Assembly: GCA_047495785.1 (NCBI GenBank) | Contig: JBLDXI010000001.1 | Span: 2,852,001 to 2,916,000, forward strand | Origin: Lepidodermella squamata | Taxonomy: Eukaryota; Animalia; Gastrotricha | Direction of reading: 5' to 3' | DNA: 64,000 nucleotides | The notes under the pieces: model-generated | The model's input: the letters and a program-made list of their open reading frames with translations, nothing else | The model's database searches: none | What the model was told of the DNA's origin: nothing | Program-made: the position numbers and the translations under genes | In this document: positions 1-57,352 of the stretch, piece by piece | Layout of the letters: each line of letters opens with the position of its first letter | Numbering within the stretch: position 1 is the stretch's first letter

Positions 1-762
1 GAGTAAACAAATTATTGGAAAAATGGCACTTTTTGATCATTTGCGTTTGGTGCCAACTATTGAAATTTGGTTCCGCTACAGCCAATTTTGGTTCCGCCAA
101 AAGATATTCTGTTTTTTACACATTTTCTTGAATAAATATGTTGAGGCCGAAAAATATTCTTTTAGTAGGAAAAACGATATCGTCCCGGATTATTTTCGCC
201 TGGACAGAGAAAAATGGGATGCCGAATAAAAAATTATTCCGCTTTCATTATTATTATTATCGGCCGCCTCCAAATGAGCTGCCCATCGGCATTTTGCCAA
301 TACTTAGATTACCATGACATGCGTATCAATTTTCGGCGACACAAGAGGCGCGTCCAATTACGCCGCTTCGGGTGCAATTTTCCGCGCGAATCGCCAATAT
401 ATGAGGAGAAAAAGTGCGCGTACTGAAAAAACAAGGCACTCTAATGAGTTTGTTCTTGTTCTGAGTTTTTTATTTCATTTTTTTCTGAACATAGCCGATT
501 TTTTTCTTCAAACGACAAAATCTCAGGAAATATAATATATTTATAATTATATCAAAAACGCGATGAAATAAATCCTCATAAAACGACCGTGGATTATATA
601 GAGAATAAACAAGATAGTAAATGATAGCCTCTCATTTTCGATGATGATGGTCACGTGAGATATTACGAAAAATTTGAACCTAAAAATTTTGTTTTTTTTT
701 CAAAGGGCTTGATCGTGGTTTAGTAACAAAATGCACGTTGTGTTTGTTAGTTGTTGTGATTC

Positions 763-12245: not shown

Positions 12246-13772
12246 CTAATTAGATCGCAACATTTGATAAAGCCTCGAGTTAGCTTTCAAATACTCAATA
12301 ATTTCGTCTTTGCTGAGCGAATCTTGGTCACTAATAGCCTTGTCAATAGCAATGACCCCAATCAGAATTTCACATTTCCCAGCAGTATTGACAACTATAT
12401 TAATATCCGATTCTGATGATTTGAAACGTTTAGATTCAAGGATCCACTCGCCAGAGTTTGAGGCGTTGAAAGGCAGAGAGCAAAAAGTTTGAGAACCATC
12501 CACCGACTCGAGTACTATCGCGCCACCGTTGTCGCAGCAAATGACTTGGTAGGCAACGACTACGTGATAATAAATATCGATTTCAACCAAAGAAATCGGA
12601 AAAACATCGATCTTGCCGGCTGAATTGAGCGAAATTTCTAAGCATGAGCTGCCCATAAATGCTGTTTTATCTGTTATTGAACAAGTTTCAGAGCTTGAAG
12701 TGTGGCATGGGGATTGTATGGCAAGATTATAACAGGGCGGATTATCGCATTTAACGCCGAGCCAGTAAGAATCTTTGACATTGCTAGTACAGAATGAAGT
12801 AAGAAAAGGTACCGCGAATCGCTTTTTTGCAGGCAACAAGCTTGCAAGGTCTCTCCAGAATGTTTGCTGATTTCTCAAGAAATCGCAGCTCGGCAACGTT
12901 TCGAAGACCCATCCAAAAGCAAAAATCGCAATCGATAAGTTCGCTTCGACAGCTTTCTCTACTGCTAATTTCGTGTCAAAGCCCCCGCCCCCGTAGCAAT
13001 TTCTGCCGAAAACGTCAATTCCAACGTAAACATCAAACTGCCGATTTGTTGCCTTGGCTAGCTCGAATGAATTGCTCAAGTTTTCCGGAGTCCAGGTGTA
13101 ATTGAGAAAAATTCCATCACATGCATTGAAATAAGCTTCGTTAAGAGAATTGAGTTCATTCTGCCATTTCAATTTGCCATCAGGATAAGTAACGCTGTCG
13201 TACCATAATGTTATACCCCCGCTGATAGCCTGTCGGATTTTCTCGGCCAATCGTTGAGTTAATCGAAGAACCAAATCTGTCTGGCCGCAAACTTTATTTT
13301 CGATATTCAACAACCAGCCATCAAAACCATAATGAACAGCTATTTCTACAAGCTTATCAACGAGACCATCGATAACTTCAATACTATTAAGCTGATTCTT
13401 CCATATTTCAAGACCAGTATCGAACTCCGTGATGAAAGTGCCAATAACTTTCACTCCATTAGCTTTGGCAACTTCAATCCAAGAGCGTGGAGGAATGGTA
13501 ACGAATTCATGAGAGAAATAAGTAAATATGTCAACAGAGCGCCAGTTCCAAAACGAAAACCCGAATCCTTCCTCCTCAATGCAACCACATCCTTCGTCAA
13601 ATCTATCGGCCAAGTAGCCACCTTTCATGTCATGGCAAAGCAAAACTTTAGCACGATCAGAAGTTGTGTCTTGTTTTACATAACGGGTATAAAATTCAGC
13701 TCTCTGGCCTTGTGGCTGCCAAGACATCAAATCTGCCAGCGTTTTCAGTGGGAGTGTGCATTTTTGGGCCAT
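12246..13772 (-). CDS. ENGASE: Cytosolic endo-beta-N-acetylglucosaminidase (GH85)
   Basis: Single-exon 508-aa ORF with VLLCHDMKGGY, DIFTYFSHEFVTIPP, catalytic YGFDGWLLNIE, WYDSVT..GKLKWQNELN, DGIFLNYTW, VYVGIDVFGR. Confidence 0.96.
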   Translation of the reverse strand: MAQKCTLPLKTLADLMSWQPQGQRAEFYTRYVKQDTTSDRAKVLLCHDMKGGYLADRFDEGCGCIEEEGFGFSFWNWRSVDIFTYFSHEFVTIPPRSWIEVAKANGVKVIGTFITEFDTGLEIWKNQLNSIEVIDGLVDKLVEIAVHYGFDGWLLNIENKVCGQTDLVLRLTQRLAEKIRQAISGGITLWYDSVTYPDGKLKWQNELNSLNEAYFNACDGIFLNYTWTPENLSNSFELAKATNRQFDVYVGIDVFGRNCYGGGGFDTKLAVEKAVEANLSIAIFAFGWVFETLPSCDFLRNQQTFWRDLASLLPAKKRFAVPFLTSFCTSNVKDSYWLGVKCDNPPCYNLAIQSPCHTSSSETCSITDKTAFMGSSCLEISLNSAGKIDVFPISLVEIDIYYHVVVAYQVICCDNGGAIVLESVDGSQTFCSLPFNASNSGEWILESKRFKSSESDINIVVNTAGKCEILIGVIAIDKAISDQDSLSKDEIIEYLKANSRLYQMLRSN

Positions 13773-18846: not shown

Positions 18847-20591
18847 TTAGGCCGATCCGTTCATCATTGCAAGAATTTCATTCTGGTCAGCCAGCATTTT
18901 TCGGTAAACTTTGTATTTCTTTTGATGAAAAGCGACCAAATCACCGTCTGTTTTCGGATAAATCAAATCGCAATCAGTTGCCATTTGACTAGTGGCTTCG
19001 TCGACGTTGGAATAAGTTCCAGCCGCTACACTGGCCAATATAGCATTTCCCAACAAAACTACCTCGGAGCATTTTGATACAGCAAAAGGCGTGGCCAAAA
19101 TATCGGCGTGGGTTTGTAAATACAACTGATCGCGAGACAATCCTCCACAGGCTACCATTACTTTTGGTGGCTTGACGCCATTCGACGCCATCAATTCCAA
19201 GGTAAATCGAATATTATAAGCTAGTGATTGAAGCGTAGCCAAGTAATAAACGGCAAGTGAGTCAAGCGAGCTGTCCATGTCCATCCCAACAATCCAACCA
19301 CGATAATCGGGCCTTGATTTCGCACAATATAATCGGGTTAATTTTTACATTTAATATTTAAAAAAAAATCCTACCTAGCTAATGGGGCCCTATTCCCGTG
19401 GAAATCCGGGCAAATGTGAGTATCTTTGGTCAAATAATTAAAATTGGCCACTGATCGAGCTGAAGCCAGCTTTGATAGATGATTGAGCAGCGTTTCCGAG
19501 CGTTTGCTCGCCTCAATATCACGACCCGCTGGGTGGAATGTGCACAACCAGTCAAGAAGCTTTCCTGCTACGCTTTGGCCCGCTTCGTAAACCCATAAAT
19601 TGTTACCAAGGGCGTTGAAAAAAGGTCCCCAAACTCCCGTGACAAACGGTGGACAATTAGATTGCGGGTTTTCAGAAAATAAAAACATGCACGTGGATGT
19701 TCCGCAAATCATTGCCCCCATTTCGGAAGACCTCAGACGTTGGCCATTAATTTGAATCTTGGAGGCAAGGCAACCAAGCGCACCAGAGTAGGCATCAACC
19801 ATGCCAGGAGAAACACCAATAGGCGAGTTTCTTGTTGACACATCGGCTTCAGATTTTAGCAAATCATTCGCGTGGGCGTTGTCTGCAATGTTTTTTCCTG
19901 GTGGCACCACTACATTTGACTTCAATAGATGTTCGTAAACATCTGCCATTCCAACCGTTTCCCAGAAATCAGGACGAAAGCTCAAATTCTGTGAATCGTA
20001 AGCCCATTTGGCGGCGACAGTACAAATTGAGCGAACCGAACTACGTCCGGTAAGTTTAAATGTGATGAAGTCTGCCAAATCATGAACAACGCCGCACTTG
20101 GACCAAACAGCCGGAAGATTTCGTTTAACCCACAATAGCTTCGGAGGCTCCATTTCGATTGAAACGCTACCGCCGTAGAAATCAAGAGCTTTGTGCTTAG
20201 TTGCATTAATTTCAGCATGCTCATCGCCAGCGCGATGATCAAGCCACATAATAACGTTATTGGAAAACTTCGGATTACTTCTTTCAGTTATGAGATGCAA
20301 CGCTTCGCCTGATTTATCTCCAAACGCTAGAGAACAAGTAGCATCAAAACAAGCACCGATGATTGAGAGTGTTTCTTTGTTGTTCTCAGAAGCTTTCTTG
20401 AATGCAGCTTTGGTAGATTTAAGAATGCCTTGCCAGATTTCGTCAGTGCTCTGCTCGCAAATATCCCCATTTTTATCGCAACGGTGGGAAGTTGTTGGGG
20501 TTACATCCATGCCAAGCAGTTTTCCACTTTTATCGAACAAGCCAACTCGAACTGACCCAGTTCCAATGTCCACAGTCAGGAAAGTATCCAT
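18847..20591 (-). CDS. FGGY: FGGY carbohydrate kinase (D-ribulokinase-like), 2 exons
   Basis: VDIGTGSVRVGLFD, FDATCSL, NVIMWLDHRA, SIEMEPPKLLW, DLADFITFKLTG, ICGTSTC, GVWGP, EAGQS..GKLLD, PDFHGNRAP, CGGLS. Intron 19313-19374. Confidence 0.96.
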
Positions 20592-21617: not shown

Positions 21618-24600
21618 ATGTCGCGGCTTCTTGAGAGGAAAGGTTATTCTAACCGCGCCACCAAGCTGGTGTCGGATTCGAAAATCACCGAAAGGCCCAG
21701 AGCCTTGGTGAGCATGCGGCGAGTATCTCAGGACAATCAGCTCCAATCTTTTCTTCACAATCAACATCAAGCGATATCCGGGGGTAATGAGGATGGCGAA
21801 GATGAAGAGCTCGTCATGGGAGCAAATGCAGCCAACGGCGACGATATTGAAGATGTGCCCATGTCTTGCGGAATTGGTTCTTGGAGACCCGCTTGGTTGC
21901 AAAAGTGTTACAACAACAAAATGGCCTTGGTTTTGTTATCATGGTTTGCGGTGTTACAAGGCTTTGTTGTGAATGGGCTAAATAACGTCAACACTACTTC
22001 GTACGAACGACGTTATCAGCTTACTAGCACAGAAGTTGGCCTAGTCTCCAGTGCTTATGATTTTGCTGCTGGTCTTGCTGTTGTCATTCCATCATATTTT
22101 GGCAGCAAGGGCCATAAGCCGCGCTGGTTGGCATGTTCAGCATTTCTGTTCGCTATGGGCTCTTTTGTTATGACACTTCCAAAACTAATAGCTGGACCTT
22201 ACCCTCCACCTTCCAGCTCAGATCAGACAGCTGTTTGTCAATTAAATGGTAGCGCATTTTCATGGGGAATTTTTATGGTATATTTAATTCATTTTGTTTC
22301 TATAGCAACGTCATGCCCATCAGTGACTGTAGAGAATGAGTCTACAATATGGAATATCTTTCACACAACAATCTCGTTTCCATCGTCATATCAATACCTG
22401 GCACTTCTCATTATGGGCCAAGGATTGCATGGTTTAGGTGGCTCGATTTTATACAGCCTCGGAACTGTATTCATCGACGACAATGTTCCACAAACTTCGT
22501 CTCCCTTCTACATCAGTAAGCTTTGCAGCGGGAAATTCATTTCATCACAGACTAAATTGTGGACAATTTATTTAGGCATTTTTTACTCATTCGCTGCCGT
22601 TGGACCTGCTATCGGTTACATTGTTGGCGGAGAATTCCTCAAATTATATGTGGATTTTCCCACTGTTGATTCAAAACAGTAAGTTGATAAACCTTAATCG
22701 CGAATGATCCTATAGTTATTTGAAATTTATTTAGCATTATGGATGAAAATGGAAAGTAAGTTTATTGATGTTATGGTTATGGTAGTTTCTAAATTCCTTG
22801 ATATATCCACAGTTATACATCTCTGACCGATCAAGATGCTGCTTGGGTTGGTGCGTGGTGGTTGGGATTTTCCATAGCGAGTCTCTTATTCCTCACGGTC
22901 GCTGCGGCTTTGCTGTGCTTTGACAAAGAGCTGCCAGGTTTGTTCACTGTTTTTTTAATTAAGACCCGGCTAATTAATGCGTTGATTCACAGAGGCTGCT
23001 GAAGTCAGACGGACCCGTGTTTCAGAACATCATTTCAGCAACAATTTCCGGCACCGCGTCTCCTCCAAATACACGCTGTGGCATTTGCCGCGCAACGCTT
23101 TTCGGCTAATTCGCAACCCCGTGTTCGCCTGTGCCTCGATTTCTGCGGCGATGGAAGGGGCCGTGCTTTCAGGATTTGCCACTTTTTTACCGAAATTCAT
23201 CCAAAGTCGATTTTCGCAGTCAGCTTTTATGTCAGCTTTGCTCACCGGTATGATTGATTTTCTTAAAATTCGGCTTTATTAAATTATTCTTAACAGGCGT
23301 GGTTGTCGTACCAAGTGGTGCCCTTGCTCAGTTTGCGAGCGGATTCGTAGCGCGAAAACTGCGGCTGAAAGTTCGTGGTCAAATAATCGCGTCGATCATC
23401 TCGCTCATTCTAAGTATCGCCTTCTCGGCGGCATTCTTGTTGAACTGCGAAAACGCGCCAATCATCGGCGTCGACGAGCCGTACGAAGCTCTCGACCCGC
23501 CCAACTACCAGAGTCTACTACTCACGTCGACTTACAACCCATCGGAACATCTCGGCCTGAACCATTCGTGCATGAGCCATTGCGGGTGTTCGACCAGGTC
23601 TTACCGGCCGATTTGCGCCGGCGGCCAGCACCAGTTCTTCTCGCCGTGCCACGCCGGGTGTCACTCGGTGAACGGCAAGTACAGCAACTGCTCGTGTCTC
23701 GTGCCGGTTAATGCGACGAAATGGCCGACGTACCAACAGCCGGACGTTGTCGACGGGCTGTGTCCGGGTGAATGCCCGGCGTTGTACGTATTCCTCGCGC
23801 TCTTTTTCCTCGTCGTCTTCTTCACGTTCTACGTGCAAGTGCCGTTGAATACGATAACGCTGCGTTCGACTTCGGACGCTGAGCGGCCCTTTGCTATCGG
23901 GTTGCAGTGGATTTTCATCAGATTCATGGGCACAGTACCCGGTCCCATTGTCTTTGGCAGTGTTATCGATTCCAGCTGCATTGTATGGCAAGAGTCGCAA
24001 ACTGGCCAATGCGAAACAGCTCCAACCCGAGCGGTACGTATTTTGCGGTTATTTTTAGGCTTTCTCGATAATCGATCACAGTGAGGGGGCTTTATTTTTA
24101 CTAGAATGAGAATTCTCATCATCCCTAAAAGATTAGTGTATTCATTTTTTTATCCCTGTGGTCGATGTAGCTCTCTATTTTTAGACGGGGAAAATTCTGA
24201 AGTGGTACATTCTGAATTAAACTGGCTATTTTGGTGCGTGATAAAGTAACTACAGGCGAAACAGAGTTATTACTCTATTTTTTGCGTATTTTTTCTGTTT
24301 TTATTACATAACTGCCCCGTTTTATTACATCTGCATTTTATTGCTGATTAGCTATGCCTGTATTTTTTCTGTTTAGTAAAGCAGAAAATTACTCATGCCT
24401 TAAATTTGAGACGCCTAATAATAATTTCTTCCGAGACACATGGCATTAATTTGATAAATAACTCAGGTGTAACAAGACGAGACAAGACCCAATTATTGAA
24501 ATGAGGGGGTGCAAATATCATTATGACTCGAGGTTTTTCAATGCGTAGTTTGAAATCGATATATTTCGCAGAATTTCTATAATTAAAAAAATTGGGTTAA

Positions 24601-30299: not shown

Positions 30300-30856
30300 T
30301 TCGGAGGATAAACTAATCATTACTCATCATCATTTGTTTATGCTTTTCCAAAGGTTTGCTGAAAAAAACTGAGATTGTCAAAATTGTACCTCGCTTGACA
30401 AAGTCTTTACCTTTATTTACCTGTTCGATGCTCCAAGCCTAAACTGATTTAAGCTGGCCTTTGGCATACAAATTAGTGCCAAGTTATTATGGTGACATCA
30501 GATTTCCCAAATTCAACAATCCTGAATGTTTATAATTTATTTTAGAAAAGAGTGTCGGCAGTTACTGGTCGGCAGTTGTCAAAATTGTACAGCTCATTTT
30601 ACAGCCAAGAGCTCTATAATGAATAAACATTGAGAAGAAGGCCAATTAGATACTTTATTTTGCTATTCCGTGCCATCCAAGATAACAAATTTCATTTGCT
30701 TATTTGAAGAGAATAATCAACTCTGGTATATGTCGTTGAACTCAGTGATGAAATCAAAAAAGACATAATAGCGAAGGTTGTTATTCTTAAAAGCACTGAT
30801 CGACTCTTGAATAAGTAAGGTATCATTGAGCTCAAACTGAACACCGGTTATATCTG

Positions 30857-33823
30857 TCACGGCTGCTGATCGAAGCGGTCGTGCTTGACTTTTGTTCTTT
30901 GCAGACGGTCCGCCAGTTCATTATTGATCAACGAATCTGCTGCCGGATTTGAAATAGTCAGCGATGATAACGTCTGGTTGAGCTGACGCGTGTCCAAGTC
31001 AAAAAATTCAGGTTCAACCTCGACGATAGGCATTTCTTGCCAACATATACTTTTGCCGCAACCAACAGTGTTTTTTTCTGCCATATCCAGATTCACATCG
31101 AGCTGTCTACGCCCAGTAATGGCGTCTCTGTAGAGCTTGATGCTATGATCGGCGATATGTGGCATAAGCCAGGCCTTCGAGCCGCTGATTGCTTTTTGAT
31201 AGCTCGTATTAGTGTGATCGAGCATTAAGCTCATTTGGTGCAGTGCATCAACTTTGTGAAAATCGAGAGGAAAAGCAAATAGCTCATTGAGAATATTGTT
31301 AAGCAACACCGCAGTTCGCTCATTGTCTTGGCAATTTTTAACAATAAGCCCGGCCTTAGCAGCTATCAGCTTGTCCACCATTTCAAGCCAATTTTCGTAG
31401 AGTTCAAACTTCATCAGCAACACAGTCATTTCCTGCCACATCCCAACGATATCGAGATTGCATGATAAACTTTCTTTATTGCGTGGATTGTGATTCAAAA
31501 ACGTGAAAATACTGCGAAGACTCCCAACAGATATGCTGTCAAGTTGGCTTTTGCGAAAGTCAATGCGCTTGACCTGGCTTAAAGGTTTTACCGTGATGGG
31601 CGCTTTATCAAATACGTAACCATCTGATTTATTCGCGGCCTTCTTCCAGAGCCATTTGAAAATTTTCCTACCCGAATGGAACACAGAGACGGCGGATGGC
31701 AGAGATCCGCAGAAAGTAGTGCCGTCGCAACCTTCCACGCGAGTCCAGACACAGTTACAATATGGACACTTGCGAAACGGATGCTCCGAGTCAAGGCTGC
31801 CTTCCAAATGACTTCTCGACTGTAAACAGTGATCAAAATACGCTCTCACTTTGGAATTCAGCTCCTCGCGCAAGTATTTCGACCAGTAGTAATCGTCAAC
31901 TCTTGTAACGTCCAGGTTGTTTTCGCGCACGAATTCCTCAACCAATTCGTTGAAACGCTGCTTCATATCTTGAAGCATGCACAACATAAAATCTTGCCGT
32001 TCTAACGGTCCCTTGATACGCTGGGCATTGTCGACGACGGATTTTACGAAGAGGCTCGCCTCGGCTATAGCATCGCCAGCCGATTTCAGAACACCCTGTT
32101 CATTTCTTCTGAGGTCAAAGTAACGTGAAAGATCTTCGACTGATATTTCGATCACCGCAGCTCCCGTCAAATGGTGCTGGCCTATACAGTCGACGAATAG
32201 TTCCTCAACATGCGACATATCTTTGGAGATGTAAAGCGTACTGTCGACGCCGAATCGCTGAGTCATTTTCACCTGAACGCGACGTTGAACCTCAGCTTTA
32301 CTCGTTCGTAATTTCTCGGCGAAATCCCAATGTGTCACAACGATTGTAATGTTGTTCTTCAAATCAGCAGCTAGCGGATCAACAACACATGCCACGTCGG
32401 TCACCATATTATCCATGCGGTTGTCAAATTTGCATAGTACAAAAATTCGCGTGAGAGGTCGATACCGCAGCGCGTTTGCTATGTGAATAGCATGGTCGAC
32501 ACGGTTATCTATTGACCTGTAGCCAGGCGTATCGGCGAATTCAAACATTGGCATTGAATAAACTGTGGTCTCAGTTGTGACACTCTCGTCGAAGTCGCTT
32601 GTCACCAACGGTTTCCGAATCAACCGCTCTGCTAGTGTAGTTTTCCCGCAACCAACTGCACCAATGAGAACGATATAGGGCAAAGCTAGTAAACATAAAA
32701 TTTGAGTTGGGGATAACTTTTAAAGAAATAGAAAAGCTCAGAACTCAAGTAGGGATGCTCGGCAGCTTGTGACATGGTGAAACGGTCGATAGGTGAATCT
32801 TTGAGAAGGTTATTGACTAGATCATCCAGTTTAGCGTTGTAACCACAATCGGAGGGTTTAATTTGCCTATTGAGCTGTGAATAACAGTACATGATATTGT
32901 TTATTGTTCACATCTAGCCTAAAAAAAACGGTATTCCTACCTTCAACTCGAAAGTAGCCATCTCATTGATTGTAACGCCGAGTGACCAGTTGTCACACTG
33001 CTGTGTGTATTTTTGCCCACCTCTGAACTCAGGCGCGAGGTAAGGCAGAGTTCCAGCTGGCGTATCTGTTACCCTAAACCGACCAAACTAAAAACCAACA
33101 CTCGATTCTAAAATCTCATTTAAATTACTCATCCTCCCGTTTCGCCAATCCGAAGTCGCCAAGTTTAATGACACGCTGATTATCGCTTAGCAGAATATTC
33201 TAGAGGGATGAAAGAGTAATTTTTCGGCAAATGCAGCTTGTCATTTTGATTTACATCTGGCTTGATGTCGCGATGTACAAGAGAGCAATTATGCATGTAG
33301 TTGAGTGCATCGACCATTTGCTTTGACCATGACAGCAGAACTAGCTGGGGCAAACGTTCACGATTAAAGACAGCTTTATTGATGGCTTGGCGCAACGATC
33401 CGCCATCACAGTATTCCATCAAAATACAAAGAGTTTGTTCGCTCGCATCTTCTGTAAAATCAGACGAATTTAAGTCGTGTAGACGGAAACGTACTTCGAA
33501 CCTATGACGATCGCATCAAACACGGCAACTACGTTCTTGCACTGGACGTACTTCATGTTTTCAGCCTGCAAAATGTAATTATTATTTTGTTGGGATTATG
33601 ATGCGGCTATAACCTCCAGCAGAACTCCTTTCCACAACTTCTCACCCAACTCCTGACTGCCCCTTGTTTTCGACATCAATTTAGATTTGACGACTTTTTT
33701 TAGAGCGTAATGAGTATTCCCCGCGTTGCTTTCCTTAACCATAAATACATCTCCGAAGCTGCCTGAACCCAGTGGTCGGATGGTGTCGTAAAATCCTAGC
33801 CTGTCCAATGATTGTGTAGCCAT
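30857..33823 (-). CDS. Ser/Thr kinase (NEK-like) fused to AIG1/GIMAP-like P-loop GTPase and Cys-rich C-terminal region, ~877 aa, 7 exons
   Basis: Exons 33614-33823, 33502-33565, 33255-33451, 33129-33199, 32941-33073, 32745-32874, 30857-32685 sum to 2634 nt with no internal stop. Kinase motifs GSGSFG, YALK, MEYCDGG, HRDIKPDN, KLGDFG, YLAPE, DNWSLG. GTPase motifs GAVGCGKT, SVT, DTPG, VVTHWD. The GTPase ORF has no ATG ahead of its P-loop and is preceded by a splice acceptor. Confidence 0.82.
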
Positions 33824-39184: not shown

Positions 39185-41419
39185 ATGCCATCGAAAAAGC
39201 CGCACCAGGGAGCAATTGGAAATGTAAGTATATACTAATATTTTTTTCAGGTTCCTTGCTTATGCCAATTTTTCTTAGGGCGAGATGTGAAGTCCTTGTG
39301 GGGGCTAATTGCGACGAGAGCGTACGGTTCAAATTCATGGAAGAATCGAAAACGATCATATCAGTTATGGCAGGCTAATAAGCCTTTCGAGCAAGTTCCG
39401 CTGCCACAATCCGAAACATCCGAAACTTCGTCGCCATCTTTCTCAGCTGAATCGTTTATCGTCCGCGTTAAACAAACCGAAAAATTCAACCCTGTTCTCA
39501 AGCCGAGCGGGAAGACTAAAGGTGGCAAGGATAGATTCAAATTCAAGTTTGAAGATGGCTGGGCCGACCAATTGAGAGCAGCAGCGAAGCCGATCATCGG
39601 CTGCTTATTTTTCCCCAAAGATCACTACGTGAGCTCTGGGTTGATTATGGCGTCAGGGACAGGGAGTTGTGGCTACCCAAAATGCCGATCGCTTAGCTTC
39701 ACTGTCAGCTTGGACAGCATCGATGATGGTTTTCTAACTTTCGAGTTCAAAGTTACCAAAGGTCGGTCAATCATAAACTGATAATTGTGCTAAAAAATAA
39801 CAAGCTGAATTTGCATTTAGGGGAATTCAACCATGAGGGTGAACCCCGAAGGGAGAAAATCCAAGGTGAGAAACGGGCTGAAATGGCTGAACGGCTGAAG
39901 AAATCTACCGCGGTGAAGGTATTGGGCGAATTGTGCTCTGCAATGCCGGAATGCGAAGCTCCCGAGTTGGCGACTTTACACAAAATTCAATCGGAAGAGA
40001 TTAACTTGGGTAAGTATATGTTTAACTTGTTTATCATGGATGTTTATTCAATCGTCTGTCATTTTAGTGGGACGCGCTGACCCCGACCCCTATCGAGATT
40101 TGAGCGCCCTCAAGGCAGAGCAGATCAGCCAGGGAAGGCCATACATTCGTGATATTATTGTAAGCTTACTCGTTGAATGCCTAGTTACTTGTCTCAAGTA
40201 ATTTATCGTAGGATCCCTTTGGAGTTTACCTCTATTTCGAAATTTCACTCGACCTTTTCTTTGAAGCGGTTAAAAAAGGTTACGTAATATTAAACTTCGA
40301 CGCTACGTCTGGAATTTGGAAGATCGACCTGCTTACTGGAAAACGAGTCTTCTACTACGCTATGCTCCTAACCACTGCTGAAGGCCAGGCGTTGGATTAC
40401 CCCGTTGGCGAGTTCATCTCCGCCGTCCAAACATCTGTATGCATCGGCAAAAAGAAGTCGATGCGACCTCTGCACCACCCGAAACTCAACAAAGTTACTT
40501 ATCAAACGTTGATGCGAATTCGAGAGCGTTGGCTTCCTCCAGCTCAAATTCCTAGCTGCGCGGAGGCGGATTCACGGCAACTTGACGCTTTCTTGTCGGA
40601 CGATTCTAACCCTTCGTCTTCGGCTGATCCAATTGCACGCGAAAACCAGCAACCTTCGCAGGCTGAATTACCCCAGATTCCTCAAAAGAGAGGTCGTGGA
40701 AGACCAAGGAAGCTGGTCGAAGATGTGGCGCCCCGTAGCCAGCGTTTGCGTCCGCGTGAAACCGCCCCGACACGCTTTGCTACTGACTTGGCTTCATCTG
40801 CACCTACTGCACCAGCCTCTACCGCGCCAGCCTCTGCCGCGCCAGCCTCTGCTGCGCCAGCCTCTGCTGCGCCAGCCTCTGCTGCGCCAGCCTTTGAAGA
40901 AGCGCCCCGACCTTCGCTAAGCGAGCTGAGGCGTTATTTCCGAGAAAGACAGTTTTTCCTGAAAAAGATTGCAGGTGACGGGTCATGCCTGTTCGGCTCG
41001 GTTGGGGACCAGCTGGCTGTCGTATGCGAGCAGCTAATTTCGGCGCTTCAACTGCGTCAAGACGTGGTAGAATACTTCAGGATTAACAAGGCACGAATGA
41101 AAGGCTTCCTGCGAGGATTTTTCGCAGAAGAGATGAGCGGCGAAGTCTCGGACGACGACTACGACGGATGGGGTTAGTTGCAATATTCTACCTTGCTAAA
41201 AGTTTCAAATTTTTCTACGTAGTCGACAACTTGGCCCTACCTGGTTCGTTCGCCGGCGAAGAGGCGCTCGTCGCAATCGCCGAAATGTATGGAGCACGAA
41301 TAATTATACACCGTTACAATGGCCCGAGGACTGTCGTGGCGGCGCCAGAGGGACACGCGGCCGAATTAAACATTTTCTTTAACGGCCGCGACCATTACGA
41401 TAGCCTTCGTAGACTATAG
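39185..41419 (+). CDS. Internally deleted MULE transposase fused to AT-hook, PASAA repeats and OTU cysteine protease, ~662 aa, 6 exons
   Basis: Exons 39185-39223, 39251-39761, 39821-40009, 40068-40159, 40212-41172, 41223-41419 total 1989 nt, open. MULE-like DPFGVYLY..LNFDATSG..VFYYAM..PVGEFIS; KRGRGRPRK; OTU IAGDGSCLFGSV...FAGEEALVAIAEMYG...NGRDHYDSL. Confidence 0.85.
40811..40893 (+). repeat. 15-bp coding minisatellite (CCAGCCTCTGCTGCG, PASAA), ~5 copies
   Basis: Direct tandem repeats within the MULE ORF linker. Confidence 0.9.
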
Positions 41420-55472: not shown

Positions 55473-57352
55473 CTATAGCTGCCACACACCACCATTGGCT
55501 GGATAATAAATATCAGCCTGACCGAAGTACCACATACTTTGTCCGCCAAAACTGCCGCGATAGTTCTGTGCACTAAGAGGTGACGGGCTCCCCCAAGTGT
55601 TGAAGCGTGGCAATGCGGCTGGCTGGAAAATATTTGGCAGATCAAAGCCGCTGATTCGATTTTGCTGACTACTGACAGCGGCTCTATAACTGCTAGGGAA
55701 TTGGAAAGCTTGATTTGCAAACAAGCTCTGAGGAGAGCTCGGCGCCAAGAAGGGTAAAATGGGCTGCGAAAATTGCGTCGCTAGATTCTGGCTACCTGAT
55801 GGGATATTCCTATTAATAACGCCATTGAACTGCCTTCCGAAGAGATCGCCTTGAAAGGGTTGAATTTGCCATTGGTTCAGATAAACTGGCGGATTTTGCA
55901 TGCCTGTGAAAAGCGGACCCAACTTGTAAGATGACTGCTGAGCCCATTGACTTTGGAAGCCCGACGCACCAGGAATGTTCCATTCAACCCTCCAAGTTTT
56001 TGTTGTTTCTTCAGGATTATCAGTTGTGCTACGTGTCGTAACAGGAGTCACCGTCGTCTCCTCTTTTGTCGGTGTGGTTTCTTGGCTGGAGCGAGGAGAA
56101 ATGTTCTCTGTCGTAGACCCACGATTATCAGTAGATGCAGTTGTTGGAATATCGTCCTCCACAACAGCTCTCTGAAAGATGGGTCTCACGCTGATAACCT
56201 CTTCGGTAGCCTGAGTAGTTGTGGTTGAAGGGCGCATTCTGCGAGTAACGGGCTCGTCAGTTACAACAGCTTCTGTTGTCGCGAGCTCTACTAGCTCTGT
56301 GGTAGGCTGAGTATCCTCTGCGGTTGTAGGCCGAGTTCTTCGAGTAACAATCTCCTCAGTAGTGGTCTCCGGGGTTGTTGTTGGCCGGGTTCTCCGACTA
56401 GGGGAAGTTTCTGGTGGCGGAGAAGTGACCTCTATCGTGGTTGTAGGACGGGTCCTTCGGGTGATTACTGGTTCCTCGGTCGTGACACCCTCTGTCGTTG
56501 TGGTCGGGCGAGTTCTGCGACTTGGAGCAGGAGTTGTCAGCTGATCATTGTTTCCTACATCACTGCCTTGAATGATAGGCACCTGTCGAACGCTACCCGA
56601 GTCCGGGCAAGTGTTCTTGTAAACCAGCTCGTTAACAGTAGTGGAATCTATGGAGGCCACGTCAGAATCAATTAGTTGTATTACGTAATCTGGCTGAGAA
56701 GCGATAGAGCGTAGGTAGGTAGCGTTGTAATCTTCGCCGAAAGCGACAAAGAAAATTTTGACCCCTGCGTTCTTCAGCAAGTTAGCTTGGTTTGTCGCAG
56801 TTGTTTGGTTCGAAGGGTCAGATCCCGTAAAAATGACCACTGTTGATGGACTGTCCTCACGATGGCCGGTAGTACTATCAGCGTAAAGCTGAAAAGACAT
56901 AAAAGTATGAAGAATGTGTAGATTCTTTATGCTTACTTGGCGAGCAGCTCGAAGGCCTCGAGCTAAATCCGATTCGAAGCCAAGCTCGTTCGCAGTCACC
57001 GAAAATTTACTGAGAGCCTCAGTGAGCTCTGGGCGCGACAAGTACATGCCGAAGTCCACGCTAGGCTGAGAGTTTGAGGCATACTCAACGACTGCGACCC
57101 GAAGATCGGCGCATTGCGGTAAGGTCTGTGCAAACGATGTAACGTAAGGCTGTGCCAATGAGCTATATTTCCTTGGCCCCATGAACGCACGGTCGATCAT
57201 GAACGTAACATCAGGCCGACAGCAGATTTCACTTGATCAAAATTTGAATAAAGGAAAACGAGGGAGACATTGCAATCTTACCTGTCCTGTGACTGAACCT
57301 TGGAGAGGCTCACAATCAGCACAAAAGCTGCTAAAATGATTGAAAGCGCCAT
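55473..57352 (-). CDS. Secreted vWA-domain protein with Thr-rich RRTRP repeats and Q/S/F-rich tail (paralog A), 3 exons
   Basis: Signal peptide MALSIILAAFVLIVSLSKVQS; EICCRPDVTFMID; vWA fold (RVAVVEYAS, GLRAA, STVVIFTG, LKNAGVKIFFVAFG, LRSIASQP). The ORF track reads through a short in-frame intron at ~56890-56936. Confidence 0.9.

Follow-up and report, generated by a model that had tools for sequence, protein, structure and literature searches.

RING-between-RING (RBR) ubiquitin ligases are organized as RING1-BRcat-Rcat, with the Rcat (RING2) domain binding two zinc ions through eight Cys/His ligands. The catalytic triad of Rcat comprises a Cys-x-His motif together with a Glu or Gln (C431/H433/E444 in parkin), and the catalytic Cys is located on a loop between two strands (PMC3940038). 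A split RING2/Rcat-like motif was predicted behind a GTPase domain in DNA of the gastrotrich Lepidodermella squamata (GenBank assembly GCA_047495785.1, contig JBLDXI010000001.1, positions 2,852,001 to 2,916,000 of the forward strand; this whole stretch of 64,000 nucleotides is referred to as the window), where, if real, it would equip a kinase-GTPase protein with a non-canonical ubiquitin-transfer or zinc-knuckle effector. Our analysis retains one half of this proposal: the two Cys motifs are parts of one split and conserved module, but most of the tests that define Rcat fail. It is proposed, with a probability of about 0.6, that the motifs are the halves of a five-Cys module of about 105 residues that ends a large eukaryotic family of P-loop GTPases, most likely as a single-zinc pair of knuckles of the zinc-ribbon/rubredoxin type.

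The gene is on the minus strand and encodes an 877-residue product from seven exons that join in one open frame. Its last exon, a 608-codon stop-free stretch (30857-32683), holds both Cys motifs, and the residue numbers of C306, C309, C319, C325, C542 and W548 used here are those of this exon. Translation places both motifs where they had been reported: RKCPYCNCVWTRVEGCDGTTFCG is encoded at 31706-31774 (residues 304-326) and GCGKSICW at 31040-31063 (residues 541-548). The range given for the second motif needs a small correction, as the QEMP quoted with it extends to 31028 and the range covers eight of the twelve residues. The distance between the motifs, originally estimated at about 214 residues, is 216 when measured from C325 (the fourth Cys) to C542 (the fifth). 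The module is laid out as follows.

31634-31792, minus strand: first half of the module, exon residues 298-350, consisting of FRKCPYCNCVWTRVEGCDGTTFCG and then the start of a beta-hairpin (IFKWLWK)
31766-31768, 31757-31759, 31727-31729 and 31709-31711, minus strand: codons of C306, C309, C319 and C325, respectively
30983-31090, minus strand: second half of the module, exon residues 532-567, TVGCGKSICWQEMPIVEVEPEFFD
31058-31060 and 31040-31042, minus strand: codons of C542 and W548, respectively

A word search with the exon returned five relatives of 380-527 residues (P0001-P0005, including P0005, an 'unnamed protein product' of Amoebophrya sp. A25) with 26-33% identity over 52-58% of the exon; both motifs are found in all of them except one truncated sequence, only about 50-70 residues apart. 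The Logan contig P0003 diverges right after ...CGEVYIKVH and misses the rest of the module, which is likely due to a frame break or an unspliced intron in a short assembled contig. A profile search of the module region against 1.84 billion representative proteins yielded 449 clusters (50% identity) at an expectation value (E) of at most 1e-3 and 207 at E of at most 1e-10. Most of these family members are about 450 residues long with the module at about 300-420, and both motifs recur in nearly all of the best 150 of the 449 matches. Against the window protein, a profile hidden Markov model (HMM) built from 126 members gives two separate matches, one at residues 298-350 (HMM positions 7-60, independent E 2.9e-16) and one at residues 532-567 (HMM positions 77-112, independent E 4.4e-07). 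Because the family HMM matches both pieces separately and the motifs recur across the family, the pair is not a product of chance; judged by these profile matches, the motifs are the halves of one conserved five-Cys module.

The module has the consensus RKCPHCGxVWxKVEGCDGxTTCGxRP ... GCG[KR]xIxW..M..V..P.E. For the conservation counts, the best-hit representatives were aligned to the HMM without preselection. At each of the five Cys columns, no fewer than 150 of the 153 representatives carry Cys (at least 159 of 162 once extra members of the 90% clusters are counted), the Cys of the GCG segment is kept in 147 of 148 members, W21, G26, G34, G85, G87 and W92 are nearly invariant, and the spacing C-x2-C-x9-C is found in nearly all members. 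A comparison of homologs had been suggested as a check on the split motif, and the outcome agrees with a genuine module: the EGC Cys and both halves are near-invariant, while the spacer differs in length. The window protein belongs to this family, with an MMR_HSR1 match above cut-off, a linker, and both module halves matching the HMM. Pfam (2025 copy) has no model for the module region, the PDB sequences contain no significant match to it, and no paper in the searchable literature describes the module or any studied family member.

A compact homolog was modelled (P0004, residues 276-392, with an alignment of 126 sequences). In the model (pLDDT, the predicted local distance difference test, 82) the first four Cys are surrounded by three short strands; a long beta-hairpin (51-73), a loop of lower confidence and, beyond the GCG Cys, a further two short strands follow. 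A Foldseek search of this model against the PDB gave no match with E below 1; superoxide reductase and the Yippee fold of Mis18/YPEL5 head the list, with TM scores of about 0.2. Small zinc ribbons align over both halves, including rubredoxin 1spw (38 of 39 residues, model 10..101) and LysW, and so do parkin Rcat (model 3..99) and parkin IBR. Since each zinc-ribbon match spans both halves, the ribbon in the model starts with the CPxC knuckle and is completed by the GCG segment. For the window protein itself, residues 285-608 were modelled with AlphaFold2 from alignment A5, in which C542 and W548 occupy invariant columns of the family. The mean pLDDT is 60, but both halves reach 93-97 (the second half 97), and HOIL-1 RING2 can be aligned over 48 residues, spread across model residues 5..268. 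The two halves are adjacent in this model, because the HOIL-1 RING2 alignment crosses both and both are modelled at pLDDT 93-97. One small zinc-ribbon-like core formed by the two halves is thus predicted in the compact homolog as well as in the window protein. Structure prediction, one of the checks suggested for the split motif, thus brings the halves together in both models, and the core so formed probably binds zinc.

The structural alignments favour C306, C309 and C542 as zinc ligands, together with either C325 or C319. By analogy to zinc site 1 of Rcat, and because C325 directly follows strand 3, C325 is preferred as the fourth ligand, which would leave C319 spare. In this arrangement the CPxCG knuckle should provide two ligands and the Cys of TTCG and the distant GCG most likely the other two; the long beta-hairpin and the variable loop would lie between the latter, and the EGC Cys, placed on the loop that links strands 2 and 3, would adjoin the site. 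The module shares with zinc-ribbon and rubredoxin-like domains the CPxCG knuckle and a predicted two-knuckle beta core that aligns with rubredoxin and LysW. It differs from them in that its second knuckle is apparently made of two distant Cys instead of CxxC, and in that a fifth Cys and two Trp are also invariant. The commonest sub-threshold Pfam matches of the family are Zn_ribbon_3 and UPF0547 (25 and 22 of the 126 members).

A classical four-Cys zinc ribbon contained within the first half (C306, C309, C319 and C325) is an alternative, with GCG...W acting as a separate conserved packing strand and the GCG Cys being spare or having a different task, for instance in lipid anchoring, in redox switching or in binding a metal between subunits. 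The best PDB sequence match of the family profile is archaeal Nop10, which pairs exactly these four Cys; however, the match is not significant (E 0.2). The C-x4/5-C-G spacing would suit a knuckle, and the three members lacking the central Cys, in which it is replaced by His, by Asp, or by a 2-residue shift, also speak for this alternative. On the other hand, every small zinc-ribbon structure that aligns needs model residues up to about 99-105, i.e., the GCG segment, and the GCG Cys is conserved no less strictly than the other four. A ribbon confined to the first half is therefore a tentative and rather unlikely alternative, and we prefer the split core, in which the GCG Cys is a ligand.

The module resembles Rcat in the C-x2-C-x9-C-x4/5-C spacing shared by P0096 and the HHARI RING2 stretch aligned to it by HMMER (E 0.88 for Ariadne/HHARI RING2 versus P0096), and in a central Cys (model C28) that lies between predicted strands 21-23 and 31-33, a likeness of pattern and not of catalysis. 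In a minority of members (P0006, P0096, P0120, P0101, P0106, P0112 and P0136) the spacing from the central Cys to the next is C-x4-C and not C-x5-C; these, for instance with GCDNMVC or GCNNVVC, show the exact Rcat spacing and are the most similar to the Ariadne RING2 motif. Most of the hallmarks of Rcat are missing. At the position two residues after the central Cys, where Rcat has its catalytic His, 136 of 146 members have Gly and none has His; only five Cys columns are conserved and no conserved Cys or His follows GCG..W, leaving no second zinc site. The absence of both features had been recognized in the original prediction, as had that of RING1 and IBR: Pfam detects no RING or IBR domain in the last exon or in the module, the upstream exons match Pkinase, and the 877-residue product is composed of kinase, GTPase, linker and module. 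Pfam IBR (PF01485) and IBR_1 (PF22191) each match 2 of the 126 members, with best E values of 0.084 and 0.021, which fall well short of the gathering scores, and neither matches the window protein. The 'ICW' that mimics the 'FCW' of Rcat is peculiar to the window copy, homologs having T, V, N, D or E at that place. The module carries its own hairpin and loop of 45-216 residues where Rcat domains (parkin, HHARI/ARIH1, HOIP and HOIL-1) have four residues, and neither sequence nor profile comparison with these domains gives a significant match.

We therefore do not class the module as an RBR-type ubiquitin-transfer domain, and its likeness to one is at the motif level and weak, although it may be a distant relative of the first lobe of the IBR/Rcat fold. 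A minimal Rcat-like transfer module, in which the Cys of CPxC, TTC and GCG hold one zinc and the invariant EGC Cys is a free nucleophile that forms a thioester with ubiquitin, a ubiquitin-like protein or another acyl group, seems very improbable to us; with it, the kinase-GTPase would gain a ligase-like output. We give equally little credit to the related idea of a stripped-down, single-zinc relative of Rcat/IBR whose spare C319 is reactive or thioester-forming, that is, a GTP-gated transfer enzyme without RING1. If C319 were reactive, a transfer activity would be coupled to the kinase here, and the helical insert described below could gate access to the Cys.

The architecture upstream of the module is as follows. 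All splicing evidence comes from a public sequencing run (X1) that behaves as RNA; exon 1 (33614-33823) and intron 1 (33566-33613) were deduced from the open reading frame together with nine loose letters that end the contig. In a second public run (X2) the stretch is a single, nearly identical contig, and this run may be the source assembly.

33614-33823, 33502-33565, 33255-33451, 33129-33199, 32941-33073 and 32745-32874, minus strand: kinase exons, from the RNA contig and the reading frame
33452-33501, 33200-33254, 33074-33128, 32875-32940 and 32686-32744, minus strand: introns removed in the X1 RNA contig
32745-33823, minus strand: Ser/Thr protein kinase domain, six short exons, product residues 1-269
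32174-32685, minus strand: P-loop GTPase domain, approximately residues 1-170 of the last exon
31793-32173, minus strand: linker from the GTPase to the Cys module, approximately exon residues 171-297 (alignment A1)
30857-30982, minus strand: poorly conserved C-terminal tail, with the stop codon at 30857-30859

One X1 contig (record 3) covers 32200-32685 and then omits five GT..AG intervals of 50-66 nt on the minus strand. The joining of kinase and GTPase is proven in spliced RNA, since this single contig spans both. A second X1 contig runs without gap from 30722 to 32132, extending 135 nt past the stop codon, at a depth similar to that of the spliced kinase-GTPase contig. Because it is gapless, the spacer between the motifs is part of the assembled transcript and is not an intron. 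The kinase domain is complete and shows the motifs GSGSFG, ALKK, HRDIKPDN, DFG and APE; Pfam PF00069 (Pkinase) is matched by its exons at E 1e-12, 2e-8, 1e-3 and 4e-3, and its nearest solved structures are PKR, GCN2, Wee1 and NEK. The kinase C-lobe leads directly into the GTPase without a linker. The latter has the motifs G1 GAVGCGKT, G3 DTPG and a G4-like VTHWD, scores 24.7 bits against Pfam MMR_HSR1 (cut-off 21.9), reaches 0.96 to MMR_HSR1 clusters in an ESM Atlas feature search, and aligns with the homologs P0001-P0005; NCBIfam and PADLOC searches gave generic GTPase similarity and nothing beyond it. The linker length is kept across the family, the module beginning at about residue 300 in the members.

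The kinase part has six introns of 48-66 nt and the GTPase-linker-module part (1.8 kb) is a single exon, whose nearest identifiable relatives are from protists (Amoebophrya and Pelomyxa). This would fit an intron-poor gene, possibly acquired horizontally and fused behind a resident kinase. The kinase-GTPase gene is outside any GTPase cluster, as its neighbouring open reading frames encode a GH85 endo-beta-N-acetylglucosaminidase (12249-13772, minus strand), an FGGY sugar kinase (19374-20591, minus strand), an OATP transporter (21618-24081, plus strand, two exons) and a VWA-domain protein (55476-57200, minus strand), a set of genes in keeping with an animal genome. For the open reading frame at 40362-41174 (plus strand), a Pfam scan gave no match at E of 1e-4 or below.

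The spacer of the window protein is unusual in length. In the best 150 matches the fourth and fifth Cys are separated by 54 residues in the median, by 76 at the 95th percentile and by 160 at most, and the 216 residues of the window protein are the longest seen, lying outside the family range of about 45-90 for hairpin and loop. The HMM skips about 181 residues, in agreement with the large loop insertion originally proposed, and at the sequence level the window protein is a family variant with an inserted region. Two features are assigned to it.

31091-31633, minus strand: lineage-specific insertion in the variable loop of the family, about 181 residues (351-531), skipped by the HMM
31394-31495, minus strand: possible degenerate relic of a second half, NHNPRNKESLSCNLDIVGMWQEM..., inside the insertion

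The insert is predicted to be mostly helical with low confidence (AlphaFold2 pLDDT 40-72), and its model structurally matches generic helical hairpins only. No relatives were found by word search with the C-terminal region or the insert alone, by self-BLAST, or by tBLASTn on the window; the best score in an ESM Atlas feature search, 0.81, is at chance level. Long insertions in the same loop are also present in two other members, Pelomyxa P0135 and P0150. The segment NHNPRNKESLSCNLDIVGMWQEM occurs 81 residues after C325, approximately where homologs have their real second half. Its local alignment to the true second half, NLDMAEKNTVGCGKSICWQEM, scores 40 (shuffle p 0.0012, uncorrected, with about 100 positions tested), and MAFFT twice aligned it to the GCG..W of the homologs, whereas the family HMM prefers the distal copy. 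From these alignments, NHNPRNKESLSCNLDIVGMWQEM may be the decayed original second half, replaced by a duplicated distal copy. That a 'WQEM' repeat marks a duplicated target site or a clean tandem copy was also considered and rejected, the DNA similarity being only 26 nt with 6 mismatches. Likewise rejected was the spacer as an intron: the RNA contig is unspliced there, five introns of 50-66 nt are removed upstream, and one candidate donor/acceptor pair, checked by eye, is out of frame.

It is also very improbable that the module is disabled in the window copy and its split devoid of functional meaning, whether because the 180-residue stretch is an intron that escaped recognition or because an insertion has disrupted a gene in decay: a spacing four times the family median, an insert lacking relatives and modelled poorly, and contig data compatible with minor spliced isoforms would suit it, but the 216 codons between the halves contain no stop, the RNA contig keeps the stretch at the depth of the spliced kinase exons in a gene whose introns measure 48-66 nt and not about 540, both halves score strongly against the family HMM with every invariant residue kept, and two other members carry long insertions in the same place.

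Under the preferred reading, a split single-zinc end-module, the variable loop has gained the helical-predicted insertion of about 180 residues in this gene, and a complete Ser/Thr kinase is fused in front of the GTPase. Judging by architecture only, the module could be a structural, partner- or target-binding, or assembly end-piece of a GTP-controlled switch whose output is the accessory domain. This domain varies by member: it is a kinase here, whereas others have an ADP-ribosyltransferase, a starch-binding domain or an additional GTPase. The kinase output of the window protein might then be activated by GTP-dependent clustering. Among the family, Pelomyxa P0135 has an NAD:arginine ADP-ribosyltransferase at its C-terminus, P0002 has a CBM20 starch-binding domain at its N-terminus, P0142 and P0153 have two GTPase domains each, and P0007 has three tandem module copies and no GTPase match. 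A Pfam MZB (PF09369) match in P0007 was discounted, as it is the sum of three weak repeats barely over the cut-off and is unshared among members. The locus adds two firm facts, the RNA-proven kinase-GTPase join and the tolerance of the module to a 180-residue loop insertion, and this tolerance marks the loop as a surface site. The newly defined five-Cys end-module in turn marks a large eukaryotic GTPase family of unstudied function.

Among described GTPases, AIG1/GIMAP proteins are comparable to the GTPase domain of the window protein, both being of the TRAFAC class with a T-H-x-D-like G4 motif. The window protein has no match to Pfam AIG1 (PF04548) at E of 1 or below, and its relative P0057 scores 26.8 bits (cut-off 27). 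A five-Cys module is not known from GIMAPs, which terminate in helices or a membrane anchor. The GTPase-module family is similar to immune-type GTPases in its variable accessory domains and lineage-specific fusions; its repeated gain of effector domains is a variability typical of conflict and immunity proteins, a parallel drawn by analogy only. The closest system remains the unnamed GTPase-module family itself, exemplified by Amoebophrya P0005, Pelomyxa schiedti KAH3757173.1 (P0135) and the ESM Atlas clusters named '50S ribosome-binding GTPase domain-containing protein'. With it the window protein shares the MMR_HSR1-type GTPase, a linker of equal length and all invariant module residues; it differs in the Ser/Thr kinase of its own in front, in a spacing of 216 against about 54 residues, and in standing at 33% identity to its nearest relatives.
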